A stretch of DNA of 64,000 nucleotides from Oikopleura dioica (GCA_907165135.1 OU015567.1:13020001-13084000); one strand, 5' to 3'; numbered from the stretch's first letter, positions 5,150 to 21,691 are shown. The notes: generated from the letters alone by a model not told the origin. Translations and numbers: made by a program.

Positions 5150-8100
5150 GAGAACTATATCTGGGCATGTGACGCATATCAACTACGAAAATGAATACTG
5201 CCTGGTGGACAATAGCGTGACAGGTGTGGGTATCGAAGAAGTACAGTATCTTTCTTGTGTCTATCTCGTTGTCGTCATCGCTCGGATATTTATCGACCCC
5301 ATCGACCAGTGATATTCTCAGAGTTTGGCGAAGACGTCGTCCCCGCCAAGGGTCTTCCGATCGATGTCGGCCAGCAGCGCTGGAGACAAGCCGCCCAACC
5401 CAAGTTCGTCCAAGGAAAGAGTCTATCCTCCTTTTTATTCAATTAAATCATATCGCCGCTATACAGCCGCGCCAAGGCCCAAATCGCGCAATTATCCTTA
5501 AATCTCCATCCTCATTAGCATTTTCAAGCGCTATGCATTTCCTTGCGTATTTAAAATAAAAACAGCGACGATAACTCTCAAAAAGGTTGGACAAACAGCT
5601 TTGTTCTCGCTCTTCCGGCGCCGATCCCCGAAGGAGTGGAAGCGATGGAGACTAAGAACATCAAATTCATCGATTTCGATCGCCAAATTGCCTTCCTTGA
5701 AGAATCAGACTTGATTTGCGACATTTCAAGAGTCCATTTCGAAGCTAATGGCCAGAAAGTGAATACTTACACACCCCGAGTCGGCGACAACATCATTGTT
5801 CCGCGGCAAGAAATCACAGAGAACAGAATGGTTAGCGGTATTCGACCGAGTCAGGTGACGAAGAAATCCGGGTCAATCACGTTCTGGGATCGGAAGCGCG
5901 AGACCGGCTGGTTGAATGGCAATATTGCGTTTAATATATCCGACTGCTTGACTTGGACGCCGCGAGTGAATGAAGAAGTCTTCTTTCTTCAGATTCCGAA
6001 TAGAAAGGGACCTAGAGCGATTGAGGTTGAAAAATTTCGAGGAACCGCGGCGGGGAGGGCGAGAATCGCTCCTGTCAGTAGGTAAACTGTCTATCCTATT
6101 CAACTACCAGTAACATTGACTTCCAGGAATGACCAACGACGATTTATCTTCAAAGGCCCTCGCCCTCAAGTGTTAAAGAGACGCGACGCTCCACCCCACT
6201 TTCTCCCAAATTTCGACGTGCCCACTGCCCTCGTCAACGGTATCCGCGGTGGAACAGATATCCTCAAGATCGTCCCTTCCCTCACTCTTGATCTCAACGA
6301 GAAAAACTACCAGGATAAAATGACGGCGCTACTGTTTTGTGAAGAAGTCGCACTTGGAATTGAAATGGAACAGTTTTCATTGAAAGACGTTGTTTTGGAA
6401 CACCTCAGTTGCAACCACTTCAGTCTCGAAATCCCAGGCTTGAAGAATGAAAGTCCTCCGCTTGGAATCGCAGATTTGCTGATTATAACCGTAAAAGAAA
6501 ACGATACGATGGAGTTTCACGCGTTTATCCACACCATTCGCTTTGCCGCAAGCACTGTTATTTTCGAAATGTCCGATGTTTTCACCGAAAAGCACAAAGC
6601 CTCTCCAGTGACGATCAAATTCACGCTGAACCGCTATCCTATCAGAACAATGCAGAACGCATTAAAAGGAATCGGCCGTGATCTATCGCTCGTGACGCTT
6701 TTCCCGACGCCGACGAACTTTTTCGGGCTGGAAGACAGGCGACGATTTGAGTATATTCAACCCTATCATGTTACAGCTTCCATGATCAGCGGATTGAATC
6801 AATTCCAAAACGACGCCGTGTTGAGTGTTCTCGAGGGCGCGGGGATGTTTCATCCAAAAATCATCTTTGGCCCTGCTGGCACGGGAAAAACCCGGACAAT
6901 GGTCGAGCTCGCTAGAATACTCATCACTTGCAGCACAGCTAGAGTACTGATAGTCGCTCCATCTAACGCAGCTGCGGATATTTTACTTTCCCGTTTGAGC
7001 AATGCCCTAGGAGAACGAGCGGAACAAATCATCTGCCGCTGGAACGCACTCAGAAGAAACAACGAAACACTTTCCGAAAACTGCAAAAAGTTCAGCAAAG
7101 ATGATTTCGCCAAAGAAGCAAGATGCGTCATTAGCACTTGTCTAGCGACATCGTCACTACCTCGAAGAAAATTCGACTTTCTTCTGGGTAAATTATTTTT
7201 TCATCATTTTATTCCGTTCAAGCGCGACGGTTTTTCTTCAATTCAAAGTCACCAAATTAGTAAAATGATATCGCCATTAGTGGGCTATTTTTGGAAAGCA
7301 CCGACACACCAGACATATTCTGGGCTTTCAATAAAATCAAATTTGTAGTCGATGAAGCGTCACAGTGTACAGAGCCGGAAACATTGGTGGCGATGCGATT
7401 CACCTTGCCGGGATCGCAGGTGATTCTTGCTGGCGATCCGGCGCAATTAGGAAAGAGCTAGAAACCAGTTTAAATATAGCCATGCGAAAGTGTCATGTTC
7501 GAGCTCCAATCAGGGCCTACAGTAAAAAGCCCGTACAGCTGTCATTTTGGATTGACTACATCATTGCTTATGCGACTTATGGGCAACAGCCTTTATGAAA
7601 AGCAATCAACAGGACAGTACGACCGGCTTTATCTAACAAAGCTTTTGATTAACTATCGCAGTCATCCAAGTCTGCTCGAAATAACATCCAATTTATTCTA
7701 CGAAAGGAACAGTCGAAAACGCCATTCTATTCTTGACTCAAGACTATTGAGAACACAATGTTTTCAACTTCCGAAGGGAGCTTATGCCTGCAGATAATGA
7801 GCACTTCGATGGGACACTTGATAAATACGCTGATTTCCTCCCGAAGCCGGGATTTCCCTTCGTTTTGGTGGATGTTGCCAGTGGAACTGAGGCCCGCCAG
7901 ACTGGCTCTTTCTCTTGGTTCAATGCTAGAGAGGCGGTTCAAGTGTTATCCTACTGTAAGAATGTGATCAAAGCTGGACTTGCGCAGAGCGATGTTGGCA
8001 TCATCAGTCCATATCGGCAGCAAGTGGTTGAAATTCGAAAAATTTTGAAACTTTCGAATTTGAATGACATTCGCGTCGGATCAACGGAAGAGTTTCAGGG

Positions 8101-15730: not shown

Positions 15731-18700
15731 ATGGACCAAACCAGCCAGAAAATAGCGCAGATTGAAGAGTTGAGCAGAGAACTTGATGCTCTTCTTGAAC
15801 AAGCGACGGCCAGTGCCCCTGAAAGAGTTCAAGAAAGTGTCAAGGCTCTCCAGGCAGATAAACAGAAGCTAATCTACCAGGTAAGATGGAGTTTTTGAGA
15901 TTTTGTGATTTATTTTGAGCCAGGCGAATATTCTCAGAAGATCAGTTAATGCAGAGAAAATCGAGGCAGAGAAAAATAATGTTCTTTCGCAATTTGAAAG
16001 AGTCAAACCAACTACTTATCAAGGTAAATGATTTATTTTGAGCTTCGCAAGAAATGTATTCTATATGATGACAAGATTGAAGCGATTGTTGATTCATTTT
16101 AGATTCACGGTTATTATTGTGTTTTGATTTTTGTTTTGTACTGGGGAAATTTTAAGGAAAACCCTTTTCTCATTTTTGATTCATTTCGGGGCAAATTTTC
16201 TTGAAAGCGTTTGTTTTATCCTTTCGAATTTGGGTTTCTTATATGTGCTAGAGCATATGGACCATATGATATAGTTCTGAACATGGCAAGGTGCTACTGC
16301 CATATGTGCAGTTGCTCTCGCAGGTGATCCATTTTCCCCTTCAAAGCCATTATCCGACCTGACCATCAATTCTAGCTCCAAGTGGAACCGTCCTACCTAA
16401 ACCTGGCAAGCAAAATATCTTAATAACCTCTGCTCTTCCCTACGTCAACAACGTCCCTCACCTCGGCAACGTCGTCGGCTGTGTTCTCAGTGCCGACATC
16501 TTCGCCCGCTACTCCCGATTCAGTGGTAAGAAAGATTTGCTTTTTAAATATAAAAATATGTTATATTTACATTTTCTGTACAGAAGTGGGTTGATTTTTT
16601 CGTTATAAAGGACCTGCATCAGTTTTGCTTGAAGATTCACAGACAGATTCTACGCGCCGGCGGAGAATTGCTTGCATCACATTTGCTCCGTTTGTTTTCA
16701 ACTCTAAATTTATAAAAATAAGGGTTTATGCGTCGGAGAATCTTACCGTAAATTGCTGCTAGAATCGAGCGAATAGTTCCCAGGCGAAAGCCCATTCGTT
16801 CAAGATCATCTTGACGAAGTTGTTGAAAGGAATTGAAGGTTATGTCTTCGTCCAAGAATCGATAATGACAGTTCATCAGGTTAAAATATACAAGCAATTC
16901 AACCAGCTTCACTTCGCCATTGAAATTTTCGCGGGCTAGGAAACAGCTTTTATATTTCAATTTTTGATTTGAAACTTACATAAAAGAGCGCCGTTCTTGT
17001 TCACAAGTGAAGTCAAATCGCCATCAATATTGGCAGTTCTGAAGCCCAAAGTGCTCTTGAAGAAATTCGTGAGAAAATACGGCCCCTTTTGGGAAGTGCA
17101 AAACGTTTCGAGCTTTGGGAAAGCAATGCGGAATCGCCAGTCGTGTCGATTTAAATCCCCAGTTTCTTTCAAATGCTTGTAATCGTTTACAATCACGGAG
17201 CCTTAAACTTTTGTTTTTTTGTAGACTTCGATTAATTCTTACCTAGCTCGTAAGATTTATCAATACAGGCGAGTCCAACATCTCCCGACTGTCCCTGACT
17301 CATGAGCCAGTGATAGATCGGATTCTCCGGCTTCTTCTTGAGTAACATGTGATACATCTCATAATTATTCGTCTCGAAGGCTATTCTCAGCGCAGTGTGA
17401 CCATGAATGTTTTTCCTCTCTAACTCTTGAGGGTGATGCTCCAAGATAAGCTAAAAATGCATTTTGTGGTGCTTATCGCGCCAGGTGTTTGGTCTTACCT
17501 GAACAATTCTTATATAACCAAAGCGCACGGCAAAATGGAGAGCAGTATTTCCTCGGCGATCGACGTGATCGTTGGTTGCTCCTTCGTCCAACTTTCTGAT
17601 CACTGATGATGTATCGCCGATTCGATTGTGGCCATTTATCGCAGAACTAGAAATCCTTTATCAAATGAAAACTACCTCAAGTTACCTGTCTTCGCTCAAA
17701 TTAATATATCCGACCGCTTCCTTGAGGGCTAAATCGAGGGAAATCTGCTTTGCCGTCTTTCTGATTCTCCACTTTGCCTGCTCCCACCATTCTTCCTCCT
17801 TGTGCCGTCGCTCGAGACAGTCGAAGACGGTGCAAGATTCGCGGAAGGCTCTTTCTTGAATTTTCGTGCGCCCGGCCATTCGTGCTTTTTTCAACCGGTC
17901 GCAAAACTAACTAAATTCTTCAAAGCAAAACACCACTCGGTTCGTGGGCATTCTAGAAACATTCTTGAAAATTTTTTTTCTAGGAAAGAATACGCTCTAT
18001 ATTTGCGGAACTGATGAATATGGAACTGCTACCGAGACAAAAGCATTCCAAGACTTCAAAGAGCTCTATGATAAGGATGTTCGGCAAGCGTGCAAGGCAG
18101 TGTGCGATAAGTACCACGCTTTGCATAAAGAAGTTTACCAGTGGTTCCAAATTTCGACCGACCATTTTGGGCGAACATCGACCCAGTTTCAAGATGACGT
18201 CGTGCATGAAATTTTCAACGATTTGGACAAGCGAGGCATGTGGCTAGAAAAGGATGTTCAGCAGCTGTTCAGTCCAAAGTTGGACAAGTTCTTGGCTGAC
18301 AGATTCGTCGAGGGAACATGCCCTAAACCGGAGTGCGCGTACGAAGATGCCAGAGGAGATCAATGCGACAAATGCGGCGGTTTGCTCAACGCTATCGACT
18401 TGGTTAATCCTCGATGTAAATTCACTGGCTGTACTCCTGAAATCCGAACTTCAAAACATCTCTTCCTCAATCTGCCTAAAATTGAAAGCGAACTCAAAGT
18501 CTGGCTCAATGAAGTGACCAGCGAGTGGTCTAACAATGCTAAACAGATCTTTGATTCGTGGATCAAGAAGGGTTTGGAGCCAAGATGCATGACAAGAGAT
18601 TTGAAATGGGGAGTAAAAGTGCCAAAAGAAGGATTTGATCATAAGGTCTTTTACGTTTGGTTTGATGCGCCTATTGGATATCCTTCTATTACAGGTGAGA

Positions 18701-19753
18701 CTATCTCAAATTATCGTAAAGCCCTAGATCGAAATTTTCTTCAGCTGAGTATACTCCTAAATGGCGAGATTGGTGGCAAGGCAAAGATGTCAAATATTAC
18801 CAATTCATGGGCAAAGATAATGTTCCGTTCCATTCTGTTCTTTTCCCCTCCTATTTGCTCGGCACTGGCAAGCCCTGGAATTTGGTAGGCAGACCCTAGA
18901 ACTTTCGAGAAGAAAATTTGTTTACTTAGGTGAACGTTATAAACGCGACGGAATATTTAAATTATGAAAACGGTAAGTTTTCGAAGTCGAGAGGGGTCGG
19001 TGTTTTCGGCAATCAAGCGGCAGAAACGAATATTCCATCTGATGTTTGGAGGTTTTACTTGATTTACATGAGGCCTGAAGTGCAGGATACTGAGTTCCAG
19101 GTAAGCTATTGTAATCTCAAGAGCTTGGTAGCACATAAAATTATAGTGGAGCGATTTCCAGTTGAAGAACAACTCAGAATTGCTCAACAACTTGGGCAAC
19201 TTCATCAACAGAGGACTGTCCTTTGTGGTCAAGTTCTACGACCAGAAAGTGCCCAGCGCGGAGATAAACGGAAATATGCGAGCTTGGGTTGCTGAAGTCA
19301 ACGTTTTGCTCAAGGAGTACATTGAATGCATGGAAAGTAATCAACAAAGAGAGGGATTAAGAAGAGTGCTTGCCATCTCAAAACTTGGTAACAAATTGAT
19401 TCAAACATGGCAACCGTGGGTCAAGGTCAAATCAAAGGTAAGCTTTTTCGGGGAAAAAGCTGTCTGAAATCAGTTTTAAGGATCCAGCGTTGCGCAACGA
19501 AGCATCAGCATGTGTGATGCTTTCAGCTAACCTCGTCTTTTTATTGTCCTCATTGTTGGAGCCCTTCATGCCCATGACTTCATTCGAAATCGCGAGACAA
19601 CTTGGTGTCGCGCGCGCTCAGATTCCATCAAAGTTCGGCGCTTTCTTGGAAAAAGACCACAAAGTCTACGAGAGCAGGCCATTATTCAGAAAGATTGAAG
19701 ACGAAGAAGTGAAAGAGTATCGAGTACGATTCGCGGGCAAAGCGGATAAATGA
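15731..19753 (+). CDS. MARS1: Cytosolic methionyl-tRNA synthetase with N-terminal coiled coil and no C-terminal appended domain
   Basis: [19 protein letters not shown] (HIGH), [10 protein letters not shown], zinc knuckle CPKPEC...[49 protein letters not shown]; 1458-bp intron 16526-17983; ends at a normal TGA stop. Confidence 0.97.
16603..17879 (-). CDS. Ankyrin-repeat plus SAM-domain protein nested antisense in a MetRS intron
   Basis: [10 protein letters not shown]... coiled N-terminus; ankyrin motifs [10 protein letters not shown] and [11 protein letters not shown]; SAM-like [50 protein letters not shown]; multi-exon, wholly inside intron 16526-17983. Confidence 0.7.
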
Positions 19754-19886
19754 AGAAATTAAGGGCGTAAGATAGGAAAATTATAATATTGTGGCTGCTT
19801 CTTTTTTAATTTATTTCTGTCTGTCATTCAACGAGGTTCACTTACTTACGTAGCATTTGACAAACACTTTCATCTTCAGAAGAAAC

Positions 19887-20036
19887 ATGTGCTGAGTGTT
19901 AATTTCGTGCTGTTCGGAGGCCTTCAAGGCTATCGGCCGATGTTTTGGTTGTTACAAAGACGAGGAAGACAAGCCGCAAGCTTCTTGACAACGGCCCCCG
20001 CAGCAGCAACAGCGAACTCGAGGTGGATGAGGTTAA
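19887..20036 (+). CDS. Candidate 49-aa selenoprotein A with three in-frame UGA (codons 3, 34, 48)
   Basis: MCUVLISCCSEAFKAIGRCFGCYKDEEDKPQASUQRPPQQQQRTRGGUG*; TGA at 19893, 19986, 20028; acceptor at 19879; paralogous to the next ORF; SECIS-like element downstream. Confidence 0.75.
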
Positions 20037-20051
20037 GCCTCTTCGAGAGGC
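20037..20051 (+). promoter_or_regulatory. SRE-like stem-loop 6 nt after terminal UGA (gene A)
   Basis: TGA GGT TAA then GCCTC-TTCGA-GAGGC; same layout in genes B and PITH with compensatory changes. Confidence 0.7.
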
Positions 20052-20096
20052 GAACTAAATCCACCATGCTTTGAGTCAACTCACGACTCATCCTTC

Positions 20097-20163
20097 TGGA
20101 CGAGCCAATGAAGCTTCTTGTGAAACGATTCTGTCGACACATTTTGCAGAAACTCTTCGTCCA
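20097..20163 (+). promoter_or_regulatory. Type II SECIS-like element (gene A)
   Basis: Helix I TGGACGA/TCGTCCA; ATGA at 20108; helix II GCTTCTTGTG/CACATTTTGC (four central mismatches); AAA; mini-helix CGA/TCG; GA at 20149. Confidence 0.65.
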
Positions 20164-20319
20164 ATTCTCAAATCTACTATTTCGTAAAATAAACCATTCC
20201 CTCCCATTTGATCCAGCATTATTTAATATTCCTCCATAATTATTTTGATTTCTGAATAAATTTTTCGCATTCCAATTTCGAGTTCTTCCTTAATTTTGAC
20301 TTTTCAGACAACGAACACC

Positions 20320-20517
20320 ATGGTTTTGTGATTGATTGTTTCGGGCATCCGCTCCGCGAGTAATGCCATTTCTAAGGCCCTCAAGGGTGACGATAGCCAA
20401 AAGGTAGTCTTCTTTTAATTTTATTGGTTTGAGAATGTTTAGCCTATCGAATCCTCAGGTGGCTGACAGAAACCCCAAGCTGTCGAGAAATCGCAGCAGA
20501 AGTCCAAATGAGGCTAA
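20320..20517 (+). CDS. Candidate 52-aa selenoprotein B with three in-frame UGA (codons 4, 36, 51); two exons
   Basis: Exons 20320-20403 and 20443-20517 (39-bp GT-AG intron): MVLULIVSGIRSASNAISKALKGDDSQKPIESSGGUQKPQAVEKSQQKSKUG*; TGA at 20329, 20464, 20509; acceptor ttttcag at 20307. Confidence 0.75.
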
Positions 20518-20531
20518 GCCCCATTTGGGGC
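20518..20531 (+). promoter_or_regulatory. SRE-like stem-loop 6 nt after terminal UGA (gene B)
   Basis: TGA GGC TAA then GCCCC-ATTT-GGGGC. Confidence 0.7.
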
Positions 20532-20583
20532 CCTCAATGATTCTACTTATTCATACGTCTCAGTAAGCAAAGACTTTCTTCGT

Positions 20584-20657
20584 GCGAGCTCATGAAGCCT
20601 CAAGCTCAAAGGGTACCTGCCACGACTTTTGGTGGAAAATTTTCTTCTCGTCTAAGA
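20584..20657 (+). promoter_or_regulatory. Type II SECIS-like element (gene B)
   Basis: ATGA at 20592, GCCTCAAGCT/GACTTTTGGT helix (imperfect), AAA, mini-helix GGT/GCC, GGAA with GA at 20635; helix I GCGAG/CTCGT; near-identical to the PITH-gene element. Confidence 0.65.
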
Positions 20658-20883
20658 TTGTCTTTATCCTCTTGACATCAGCAGGATAAACGATTTTTGT
20701 TGTATCACTGCTTTTCACACTTACTGTTGATATATTCAATATAAATCCTAATAAGCGATTTCTCGTGCACTGCCTGTTGTTAAAGTATATCGGTATATAT
20801 TGACTGTTCTCGTTTAATAAAAAAATCAATTTTTGATTGAAGAAAAAAGTTGAAGAATGAACTGATAGAAAACACAAACAGAG

Positions 20884-21535
20884 ATGAGTGGTTGTGTGAA
20901 ACTTGTCGAATTAGATCCCCTCGTGGACAAGGTAAAATTGTCCGAAAATTGCCGGGTGGGTATTCATGAATTTCTTATCAGGGGAAGTCTGAGTGCTTGA
21001 ACGAAGACGATGATCACACGTGGTTGAACGTGATCGAAGAATCCGCAACCGGAGAGCTCAAATCCGACTGCGATGAGCAGCTTATCCTCAGAGTAGAGTT
21101 TACTCAGCCCGTTAAGCTTCATTCTCTCGTCATTGAAGCTGGGTGTGACGCGGAGCAAGCCCCCAAAGTAAGAGAGCTTCTCGGAGGTGCGAATTTCTCA
21201 AACCAGGGTGCTTTTCTAGGAAATTCGACTCTTTGCGAATGAAACGAGTCCGATTTCTTTTGATGATGCTGAGCAGAGAAAGTCGACGCAGGACTTTGAC
21301 TTGTCCTTCGAAGAGCTGTCGAAGCCGATTGAAGTTCGATTTGTCAAATTCCAAAAAGTCAATAATATCACAATTTTCTTCAAGGTACATCTTTTCCGGG
21401 ATCTTTTTTTTTGAGTTCGCTCTTTAGAACAACCAAGGTGATCAAGATGTGACCTCCATGTCCAAAGTGCAATTTATCGGTTCGCCCATTGCCACAACGA
21501 ACATGAGCGAGCTCAAGAAGGTCGGATGAGGCTAA
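20884..21535 (+). CDS. PITH-domain-only protein (TXNL1 C-terminal-like) with predicted C-terminal Sec-Gly (...KKVG-U-G)
   Basis: Exons 20884-20931, 20982-21167, 21220-21384, 21428-21535; ECLNEDDDH, LKSDCDEQLILRVEFTQPVKLHSL, VRFVKFQKVNNITIFFKNNQGDQDVT, FIGSPIATTNMSELKKVG then TGA(21527) GGC TAA. PITH identity is firm; Sec read-through is inferred. Confidence 0.85.
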
Positions 21536-21550
21536 GCCCCTTCGAGGGGC
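21536..21550 (+). promoter_or_regulatory. SRE-like stem-loop 6 nt after terminal UGA (PITH gene)
   Basis: TGA GGC TAA then GCCCC-TTCGA-GGGGC. Confidence 0.7.
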
Positions 21551-21592
21551 GCCGCTGAACACAGCGATAAACAACATGTTTCTTCTCCAAAA

Positions 21593-21691
21593 GAGGATCT
21601 TCAGCGAACTTATGAAGCCACAAGTTCAAAGGGCCACATGCCACGACTTATGGTGGAGCGCATTTTTAATGTCATCGCTGCCTGGATTCTC
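21593..21691 (+). promoter_or_regulatory. Type II SECIS-like element (PITH gene)
   Basis: ATGA at 21612; helix II GCCACAAGTT/GACTTATGGT (9 of 10 paired, counting G-U); AAA; mini-helix GGC/GCC; GA at 21656; basal helices CAGCGA/TCGCTG and GAGGATC/GATTCTC. Confidence 0.75.

Follow-up and report, generated by a model that had tools for sequence, protein, structure and literature searches.

Genes A and B are two small, neighboring genes on the plus strand of a 64,000-nt stretch of the Oikopleura dioica genome (GCA_907165135.1 OU015567.1:13020001-13084000), which was analyzed as a whole and is referred to here as the window (G+C content ~41%; positions are counted from its first letter). We consider it likely that they are paralogous genes whose mRNAs carry a trans-spliced leader and encode micro-selenoproteins of ~50 residues in which all three in-frame UGA codons are read as selenocysteine (Sec, U). 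The coding parts of the two genes are:

19887-20036, + strand: coding sequence (CDS) of gene A, 49 codons plus TAA
20320-20403, + strand: exon 1 of gene B, 28 codons, with a TGA at 20329-31 (codon 4)
20404-20442, + strand: intron of gene B, 39 nt, GT..AG, carrying an in-frame TAA
20443-20517, + strand: exon 2 of gene B, 24 codons plus TAA (20515-17), with TGAs at 20464-66 (codon 36) and 20509-11 (codon 51)

The translation of 19887-20036 reads MC, stop, VLISCCSEAFKAIGRCFGCYKDEEDKPQAS, stop, QRPPQQQQRTRGG, stop, G, stop, where every internal stop is a TGA (19893-95, codon 3; 19986-88, codon 34; 20028-30, codon 48) and the terminal stop is TAA. A first-pass annotation, made from the sequence alone, had reported these two proteins with three aligned in-frame TGAs per gene, and re-translation together with an alignment of A and B showed its sequences and coordinates to be correct. 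In a global alignment with U masked as X, the two proteins score 26, compared with -20 +/- 8.8 for shuffled sequences, none of 2000 of which scored as high; with U treated as C, the alignment pairs all three Sec positions. Judged by their sequences, A and B are thus paralogues, encoding significantly similar proteins even when no credit is given for Sec. By our estimate, a frame of ~50 codons lacking TAA and TAG has a chance of ~11% at this base composition and is not rare alone. The significance of the A and B frames therefore lies in how the TGAs are conserved, in the codon phase of the substitutions, and in a common 3' cassette, and not in the size of the open frames.

Transcripts and coding frame of genes A and B

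RNA and DNA sequences were mapped over positions 19400-20950 using four data sets: X24, a poly(A) RNA run labeled as the same organism and used as raw reads, from a lineage that is 88-95% alike; X6 and X8, marine metatranscriptome assemblies; and X9, a DNA assembly. The 5' ends of both mRNAs are defined by spliced leader (SL) junctions:

19878-19886, + strand: trans-splice acceptor AG (19878-79) and 7-nt 5' untranslated region (UTR) of gene A, from SL-bearing reads and contigs
20306-20319, + strand: trans-splice acceptor AG (20306-07) and 12-nt 5'UTR of gene B, from SL loose ends

Loose ends of the form ..CCGATTTCGATTGTCTAA(CAG) are found for A at 19877/19885 in X6, X8, and 47 X24 reads, and SL loose ends are found for B in one X6 contig and 149 X24 reads. 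The reads and contigs bear ..TGAGTCCGATTTCGATTGTCTAACAG joined at AG 19878-79 and AG 20306-07, and this joined sequence corresponds to the 3' part of the 40-nt SL of O. dioica (PMC6883708). Given that the SL junction lies 7 nt upstream of the ATG in A and 12 nt upstream in B, these ATGs are the first AUGs in the mature mRNAs; neither A nor B contains a second in-frame AUG beyond the first. The intron of B is absent from the X6 and X8 contigs exactly as the first-pass annotation had predicted for a 39-bp intron that keeps the frame, and the identical splice junction is present in 195 raw reads of the divergent X24 lineage, in which the exon end at the junction is AAT-AAG and not CAA-AAG (Gln to Asn). 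A and B are therefore real, separate, spliced mRNAs. X24 read depth, which serves as a rough guide only, is ~50 for A, 200-245 for B, and 20-45 for the last exons of the upstream methionyl-tRNA synthetase (MetRS) gene, whose intron at 19435-19477 is spliced in X6 and X24. A further 38 X24 reads on B exon 2 have a different upstream part, ..AATGCCATGAAAGGCGACGATAGCAATA (N-A-M-K-G-D-D-S-N-K; window 20360-20441), which is four codons shorter than B exon 1 and may represent a further paralogue or an allele.

Related DNA was obtained by matching open reading frames (ORFs) from MetRS exons against a large protein collection and then collecting the contigs of the matched proteins. One of these contigs (L121) corresponds to window 17790-20553 at 93% identity, and a second (L122) corresponds to window 19113-20296. 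The A CDS differs from L121 at 1 of 150 positions and likewise at 1 in 150 nt from L122, while its flanks differ by 11-18%. Relative to L121, the B CDS differs at 8 of 159 positions, the B intron at 10 of 39 (26%), the A-B intergenic stretch at 26 of 144 (18%), and the part of the A 3'UTR that lies 5' of the SECIS-like element described below at 5 of 45. Eight of the nine CDS changes relative to L121 affect the third base of a codon (binomial P = 0.001). In B, five changes are synonymous, including all four in exon 2, which are third-position changes and comprise a GGC>GGT (Gly) change between the last TGA and the TAA. When the ten listed X24 changes are added, the third position accounts for 16 of 19 changes and the second for none (P = 7e-6); with the CAA>AAT difference at the X24 splice junction, the count becomes 17 of 21, a total for which no P value was computed. 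The listed X24 changes in A are mostly synonymous third-position changes.

The ratio of nonsynonymous to synonymous change (dN/dS; Nei-Gojobori) for A and B together relative to L121 is 0.13 in the Sec frame, compared with 1.9 and an undefined value (dS = 0) in the two shifted frames. Synonymous changes are found downstream of the first, second, and third TGA, all six TGAs are intact in L121, and no listed X24 difference touches a TGA. This substitution pattern indicates that the Sec frame is under purifying selection through and beyond the TGAs. The checks that accompanied the first-pass annotation, namely SL-bearing transcripts, reads spliced over 20404-20442, conservation of TGA positions in orthologues, and a coding rather than non-coding pattern of substitution, all came out in its favor among the close lineages compared.

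The A mRNA (19880-20055, + strand) is also predicted to fold into a long irregular hairpin that joins the regions of the first and last UGAs (-61.1 kcal/mol; z = -2.66, with 2 of 200 shuffles equally good). Given this fold and the absence of any synonymous change in A relative to L121, an RNA-level constraint may act on the A CDS.

The 3' cassette and the case for selenocysteine

The 64 kb contain three copies of the sequence TGA-GGY-TAA-GCC: one closes A, one closes B, and one, at 21527, closes a neighboring gene that encodes a PITH-domain protein (gene C, described below). A second motif, CGA(G/A)C-NN-ATGAAGC, lies 68-73 nt downstream of each copy. In all three genes, the cassette is composed of UGA-GGY-UAA, a GC hairpin that begins at the first base of the 3'UTR, and a stem-loop resembling a Sec insertion sequence (SECIS) 80-85 nt past the last UGA:

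20037-20051, + strand: post-stop hairpin of gene A, GCCUCU/AGAGGC, -9.1 kcal/mol, unchanged in L121 and L122
20518-20531, + strand: post-stop hairpin of gene B, GCCCC/GGGGC, -10.0 kcal/mol
21536-21550, + strand: post-stop hairpin of gene C, GCCCCU/AGGGGC, from its fold energy
20097-20163, + strand: SECIS-like stem-loop of gene A, with helix I (20097-104 paired with 20156-163), AUGA (20108-11), AAA (20123-25), a mini-stem, and GA (20149-50)
20584-20651, + strand: SECIS-like stem-loop of gene B, with AUGA (20592-95), AAA (20608-10), and GA (20635-36)
21536-21677, + strand: cassette of gene C, whose SECIS-like element has AUGA (21612-15), AAA (21628-30), and GA (21656-57)

The cassette is modular, as shown by its presence at the end of gene C as well as at those of A and B. 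It is also mosaic: the SECIS cores of B and C are nearly identical, A and C share the hairpin loop, and A and B share the coding part. The hairpins start 6 nt 3' of the last UGA and have energies of -9.1 to -11.2 kcal/mol across the three genes. At the fourth pair, A has U-A where B and C have C-G, a double change, and in the B hairpin the two substitutions of L121 and the 1-nt deletion found in both X6 and X9 are all confined to the loop, so that the stems are kept.

The unconstrained minimum-free-energy fold of the A element draws an 8-bp helix I, an internal loop with AUGA opposite AGAA, a 10-position helix II, an AAA that is unpaired and lies 11 nt past the AUGA, and a 4-bp mini-stem. B and C share this layout, except that 12 nt precede the AAA. 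As far as sequence and predicted fold can tell, this order of AUGA, 11-12 nt, AAA, mini-stem, and GA is the layout of a form-2 SECIS. In an alignment of five copies, 70% of helix II positions are paired; shifting the 3' strand by 1-3 columns lowers this to 24-42%. In two pairs, both partners are altered (U-A to A-U and G-C to U-G). Changes in the A element in L121 are confined to the apical loop and the 3' internal loop. The strongest point for a SECIS comes from the X24 lineage, in which the B 3'UTR aligns solely over 20585-20633, the SECIS core; the B element is therefore, by comparison of sequences, a conserved island in an otherwise diverged 3'UTR. The sequence from this lineage (L123) retains the AUGA, AAA, and GA, with changes at the central mismatched positions of helix II and a G-U to A-U change in helix I.

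Several results weigh against the reading of all three UGAs as Sec. The Rfam model SECIS_1 (RF00031; gathering score 35), applied to 101-nt pieces, matches the B element at 20584-20651 over the full model length with only 17.0 bits (E 0.41) and the C element at 21604-21667 with 16.1 bits (E 0.75); it gives no match on the A element, and no SECIS match was obtained on a 3-kb stretch. Our loose SECIS pattern is non-specific, with seven sites in the window and 6.1 expected from Markov simulations, so that the layout alone is weak evidence; the remaining sites (1464, 16065, and 63057 on the + strand and 30250 on the - strand) were judged to be chance matches. Helix II contains 2-4 central mismatches. 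Replacement of TGA by a Cys codon (TGY) in an orthologue is a classic signature of Sec, and no such orthologue was seen among the relatives compared, which are close lineages of 7-15% divergence, with X24 differences listed up to position 20355. Genes A, B, and C are absent from the slot between the MetRS and kinase genes, the only slot compared, in two more distant relatives (L126 and L128). Finally, we know of no precedent for Sec insertion at codon 3 or 4.

This last point bears on an unlikely alternative, in which recoding is limited to the second and third UGAs and AUG-x(-x)-UGA is a terminating upstream ORF (uORF) of 2-3 codons, so that the product contains two Sec residues. The frame would then be entered by non-AUG initiation or by reinitiation at GUG codon 4 in A and UUG codon 5 in B, and a near-cognate start codon does follow the first UGA in both genes; insertion of Sec two or three codons past initiation would not be needed. 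Against this, both paralogues and L121 have the AUG in the frame of the ORF that follows and as the first one downstream of the SL, scoring U as C brings the first Sec of A and that of B into alignment, and the codon preceding the first UGA of B shows a synonymous TTG>TTA change in X24. Moreover, non-AUG reinitiation after a three-codon uORF is inefficient, yet B is well expressed.

We find it still harder to credit that near-cognate tRNAs (Trp, Cys, or Arg) decode the UGAs by readthrough, or that the proteins end at the last UGA, with the stem-loops being ordinary conserved structures of the 3'UTR. The Rfam scores below threshold, with no match for A, and the commonness of the SECIS pattern by itself speak for this explanation. 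It is less easily reconciled with three in-frame-UGA genes whose common element shows every SECIS hallmark at a constant 80-85 nt, with that element being the sole conserved island of the B 3'UTR, or with the retention of Gly in UGA-GGY-UAA across GGC/GGT changes. It is implausible that all three UGAs would be read through efficiently in the absence of a dedicated mechanism, and the organism has Sec machinery, given that O. dioica has a single SPS2-Sec gene (PMC4561486); no tRNA-Sec is found in this window.

That the TGA frames are untranslated, the RNAs being non-coding or encoding the longest alternative ORFs of 44 aa (A) and 54 aa (B), has very little to commend it beyond the presence of these ORFs in both mRNAs, the better-than-shuffled fold of the A RNA (z = -2.66), and the lack of synonymous change in A that could reflect constraint on the RNA, and we rejected both ORFs because they lie in different frames relative to the common frame, because the ATG of the 44-aa ORF is lost in X24 through 19940 A>C, a synonymous change in the Sec frame, and because the dN/dS values and the excess of substitutions at Sec-frame position 3 favor the Sec frame.

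Under the favored reading, that all three UGAs of A and B are decoded as Sec, we propose that the single form-2 SECIS in each short 3'UTR would recruit SBP2 and eEFSec-Sec-tRNA, and that the 5-6-bp GC hairpin directly after UGA-GGY-UAA would favor Sec insertion over termination at the penultimate codon, perhaps acting like SL1/PSL of SELENOS or the Sec redefinition element (SRE) of SELENON. The predicted products have an amphipathic N-terminal segment of ~22 residues that includes Sec3 (A) or Sec4 (B). The charged residues in this segment (E11/K14/R18 in A; R11/K19/K22 in B) argue against a membrane-spanning stretch. Its Cys content differs, with five in A and none in B, and the L121 form of B has one (Ser to Cys). 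The segment is followed by an acidic linker, K/G-D-(E/D)..KP, and by a tail that we read as disordered and basic, composed of U-Q-(R/K)-P, a Gln/Lys/Arg-rich stretch, and U-G. The tail Sec residues are 14 apart in A (U34..GGU48G; U-x14-U-G) and 15 apart in B (U36..KU51G; U-x15-U-G). Given that Sec34/Sec48 and Sec36/Sec51 are spaced like Cys174 and Sec188, the redox pair of SELENOS, we would expect the tail to switch between a diselenide and a diselenol state. A and B may accordingly be small redox-active or Se/metal-binding proteins, by analogy a diselenide redox module like the SELENOS tail on a short, amphipathic, and possibly lipid-anchored head.

Neither protein belongs to any Pfam family. 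Sub-threshold matches of A to CoV_S2_C (E 0.0087), SVIP (E 0.03), and Pep1_7 (E 0.077) were not taken as homology and may reflect its Cys-rich, CFGC-type segment. The 30-residue stop-free piece of A, searched against 1.84 billion representatives, matched solely a 351-aa protein (P0016) with six ..ELGRRAGCYDDEID.. repeats, which we judged to be a repeat-driven chance match. A scan of metagenome DNA for the pattern TGAGGYTAAGCC followed by a 55-85-nt gap and ATGAAGC, which proved too loose, returned 120 loci, none with the hairpin or SECIS layout, and yielded no family members. In our literature search, Oikopleura was mentioned together with selenoproteins for SPS2 only. The first-pass proposal of a new family of multi-Sec micro-proteins gains support from the SL and splicing data, the purifying selection in the Sec frame, and the conserved SECIS-like elements, with Sec itself being predicted.

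Gene C, the gene array, and a portable cassette

A and B are part of an array of genes that are all encoded on the + strand and separated by short spacers in an operon-like arrangement:

17944-19753, + strand: MetRS gene, flanking A upstream
20884-21535, + strand: gene C, encoding a TXNL1-type PITH-domain protein, exons 20884-20931, 20982-21167, 21220-21384, and 21428-21535
21787 onward, + strand: MST/STE20-like kinase gene, with a SARAH domain in relatives, flanking gene C downstream

Gene C has four exons, the first intron of which is spliced in X6, and encodes 168 residues that lack a thioredoxin domain and end in ..KKVG-U-G-stop (TGA 21527-29); the PITH domain (PF06201) was found on relatives. 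Its last exon aligns to residues 250-281 of the 289 residues of human TXNL1, which suggests that the predicted Sec of gene C stands in for the C-terminal tail. Our literature search found no paper that links PITH or TXNL1 to a Sec form.

We propose that A and B belong to an operon-like array of MetRS, A, B, and the PITH-domain gene. An 889-nt X8 contig (window 19877-20750) contains the SL, A, the A-B intergenic stretch, and spliced B, which suggests that an unprocessed bicistronic RNA may exist; it fits an Oikopleura operon MetRS-A-B-C. In such an RNA, the UGAs of A would additionally have the SECIS of B downstream. For the comparison of synteny, L126 (a 41.6-kb contig; 6332-6976) and L128 (722-1697) were usable, and L127, L129, and L130 were left out as too short. 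In both usable contigs, with 72-78% identity in the MetRS exons, the MetRS gene is directly followed by the MST-type kinase gene. The A-B-C block is therefore lineage-specific at this position.

These features lead us to a tentative proposal, to which we give somewhat less than an even chance: a portable Sec-tail cassette of ~150 nt (U-G-stop, an SRE-like hairpin, and a compact SECIS) may have been copied onto unrelated Oikopleura coding sequences, creating both a selenoprotein form of a TXNL1-type PITH protein and a three-Sec family with one Sec 2-3 codons after initiation. If so, one SECIS at ~80 nt from the stop is enough for recoding to proceed processively from the start of elongation onward. 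The occurrence of the same module on three adjacent genes suggests a simple route to new selenoproteins. Such genes would be missed by homology-based selenoprotein finders, so the selenoproteomes of compact marine genomes may be under-counted.

The three-Sec mini-proteins, with a Sec at residue 3 or 4, seem to be an undescribed and very unusual kind of selenoprotein with an unusual recoding geometry. If made as we read them, with 3 Sec in 49-52 residues, they would be smaller and denser in Sec than any other eukaryotic selenoprotein known to us and a natural instance of Sec insertion at codon 3-4, which bears on how soon SECIS, SBP2, and eEFSec act in elongation and on how one SECIS serves several UGAs. 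The module of UGA-Gly-UAA, hairpin, and SECIS, in ~150 nt, would also offer a compact system for dissecting recoding near a stop codon, a question reportedly raised by work on SELENOS SL1 and SPUR.

Comparison with known selenoproteins

The first-pass annotation had offered, as an alternative to a new family, a highly derived family like SELENOK or SELENOS. For A and B, hmmscan against Pfam with E up to 10 returned neither PF06936 (Selenoprotein_S) nor PF10961 (SelK_SelG). What stands of this alternative is the GGUG end, the 14-residue spacing, and the post-stop stem-loop; the unmatched Pfam models and the lack of a transmembrane segment tell against it. We therefore hold the likeness to SELENOS and SELENOK to be an analogy only.

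Human SELENOS ends in ACSWRPGRRGPSSGGUG, with a selenosulfide bond between Cys174 and Sec188 and the codon order UGA-Gly-UAA, and a stem-loop 3 nt into its 3'UTR promotes Sec insertion when it is close to the UGA. A shares the GGUG end (..SSGGUG in the human protein), and both A and B share the order UGA-Gly-UAA, a disordered, basic, Gly/Pro/Gln-rich tail, and a stem-loop at the very start of the 3'UTR. The potential redox partner lies 14 residues before the penultimate Sec in SELENOS and in A (Sec34-Sec48), and 15 before it in B. In contrast to the ~50 residues of A and B, SELENOS has 189, and A and B lack its transmembrane helix, coiled coil, and VCP-interacting motif. The partner is Cys in SELENOS and would be Sec in A and B, which have an extra Sec at residue 3/4, and their SECIS-like elements are only ~80 nt from the UGA, unlike in SELENOS. 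SELENOK resembles A and B in its small size, disordered Gly-rich tail, and Sec near the C-terminus, and its proximal 3'UTR stem-loop can substitute for that of SELENOS; unlike A and B, it has an N-terminal transmembrane helix and a single Sec.

SELENOP, generally described as the sole characterised multi-Sec selenoprotein (PMC8230778), has, like A and B, several UGAs per mRNA, which in SELENOP undergo processive decoding to Sec. Beyond this, SELENOP is secreted and large, its N-terminus forms a thioredoxin-like domain with UxxC, and it has His-rich stretches and a pair of SECIS elements. None of these is found in A or B, which have one SECIS-like element each and a predicted Sec content of ~6% of residues, denser than in SELENOP. 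The closest parallels for the post-stop hairpin are the SRE of SELENON and SL1 of SELENOS, which begin 6 nt and 9 nt from the UGA, respectively. The hairpins of A, B, and C, which start 6 nt past the UGA, match the SELENON distance and come near that of SELENOS. They differ from both in being only 5-6 bp, in lying wholly within the 3'UTR after a one-codon tail, and in being common to three unrelated coding regions, and we regard their role in favoring Sec insertion as putative.

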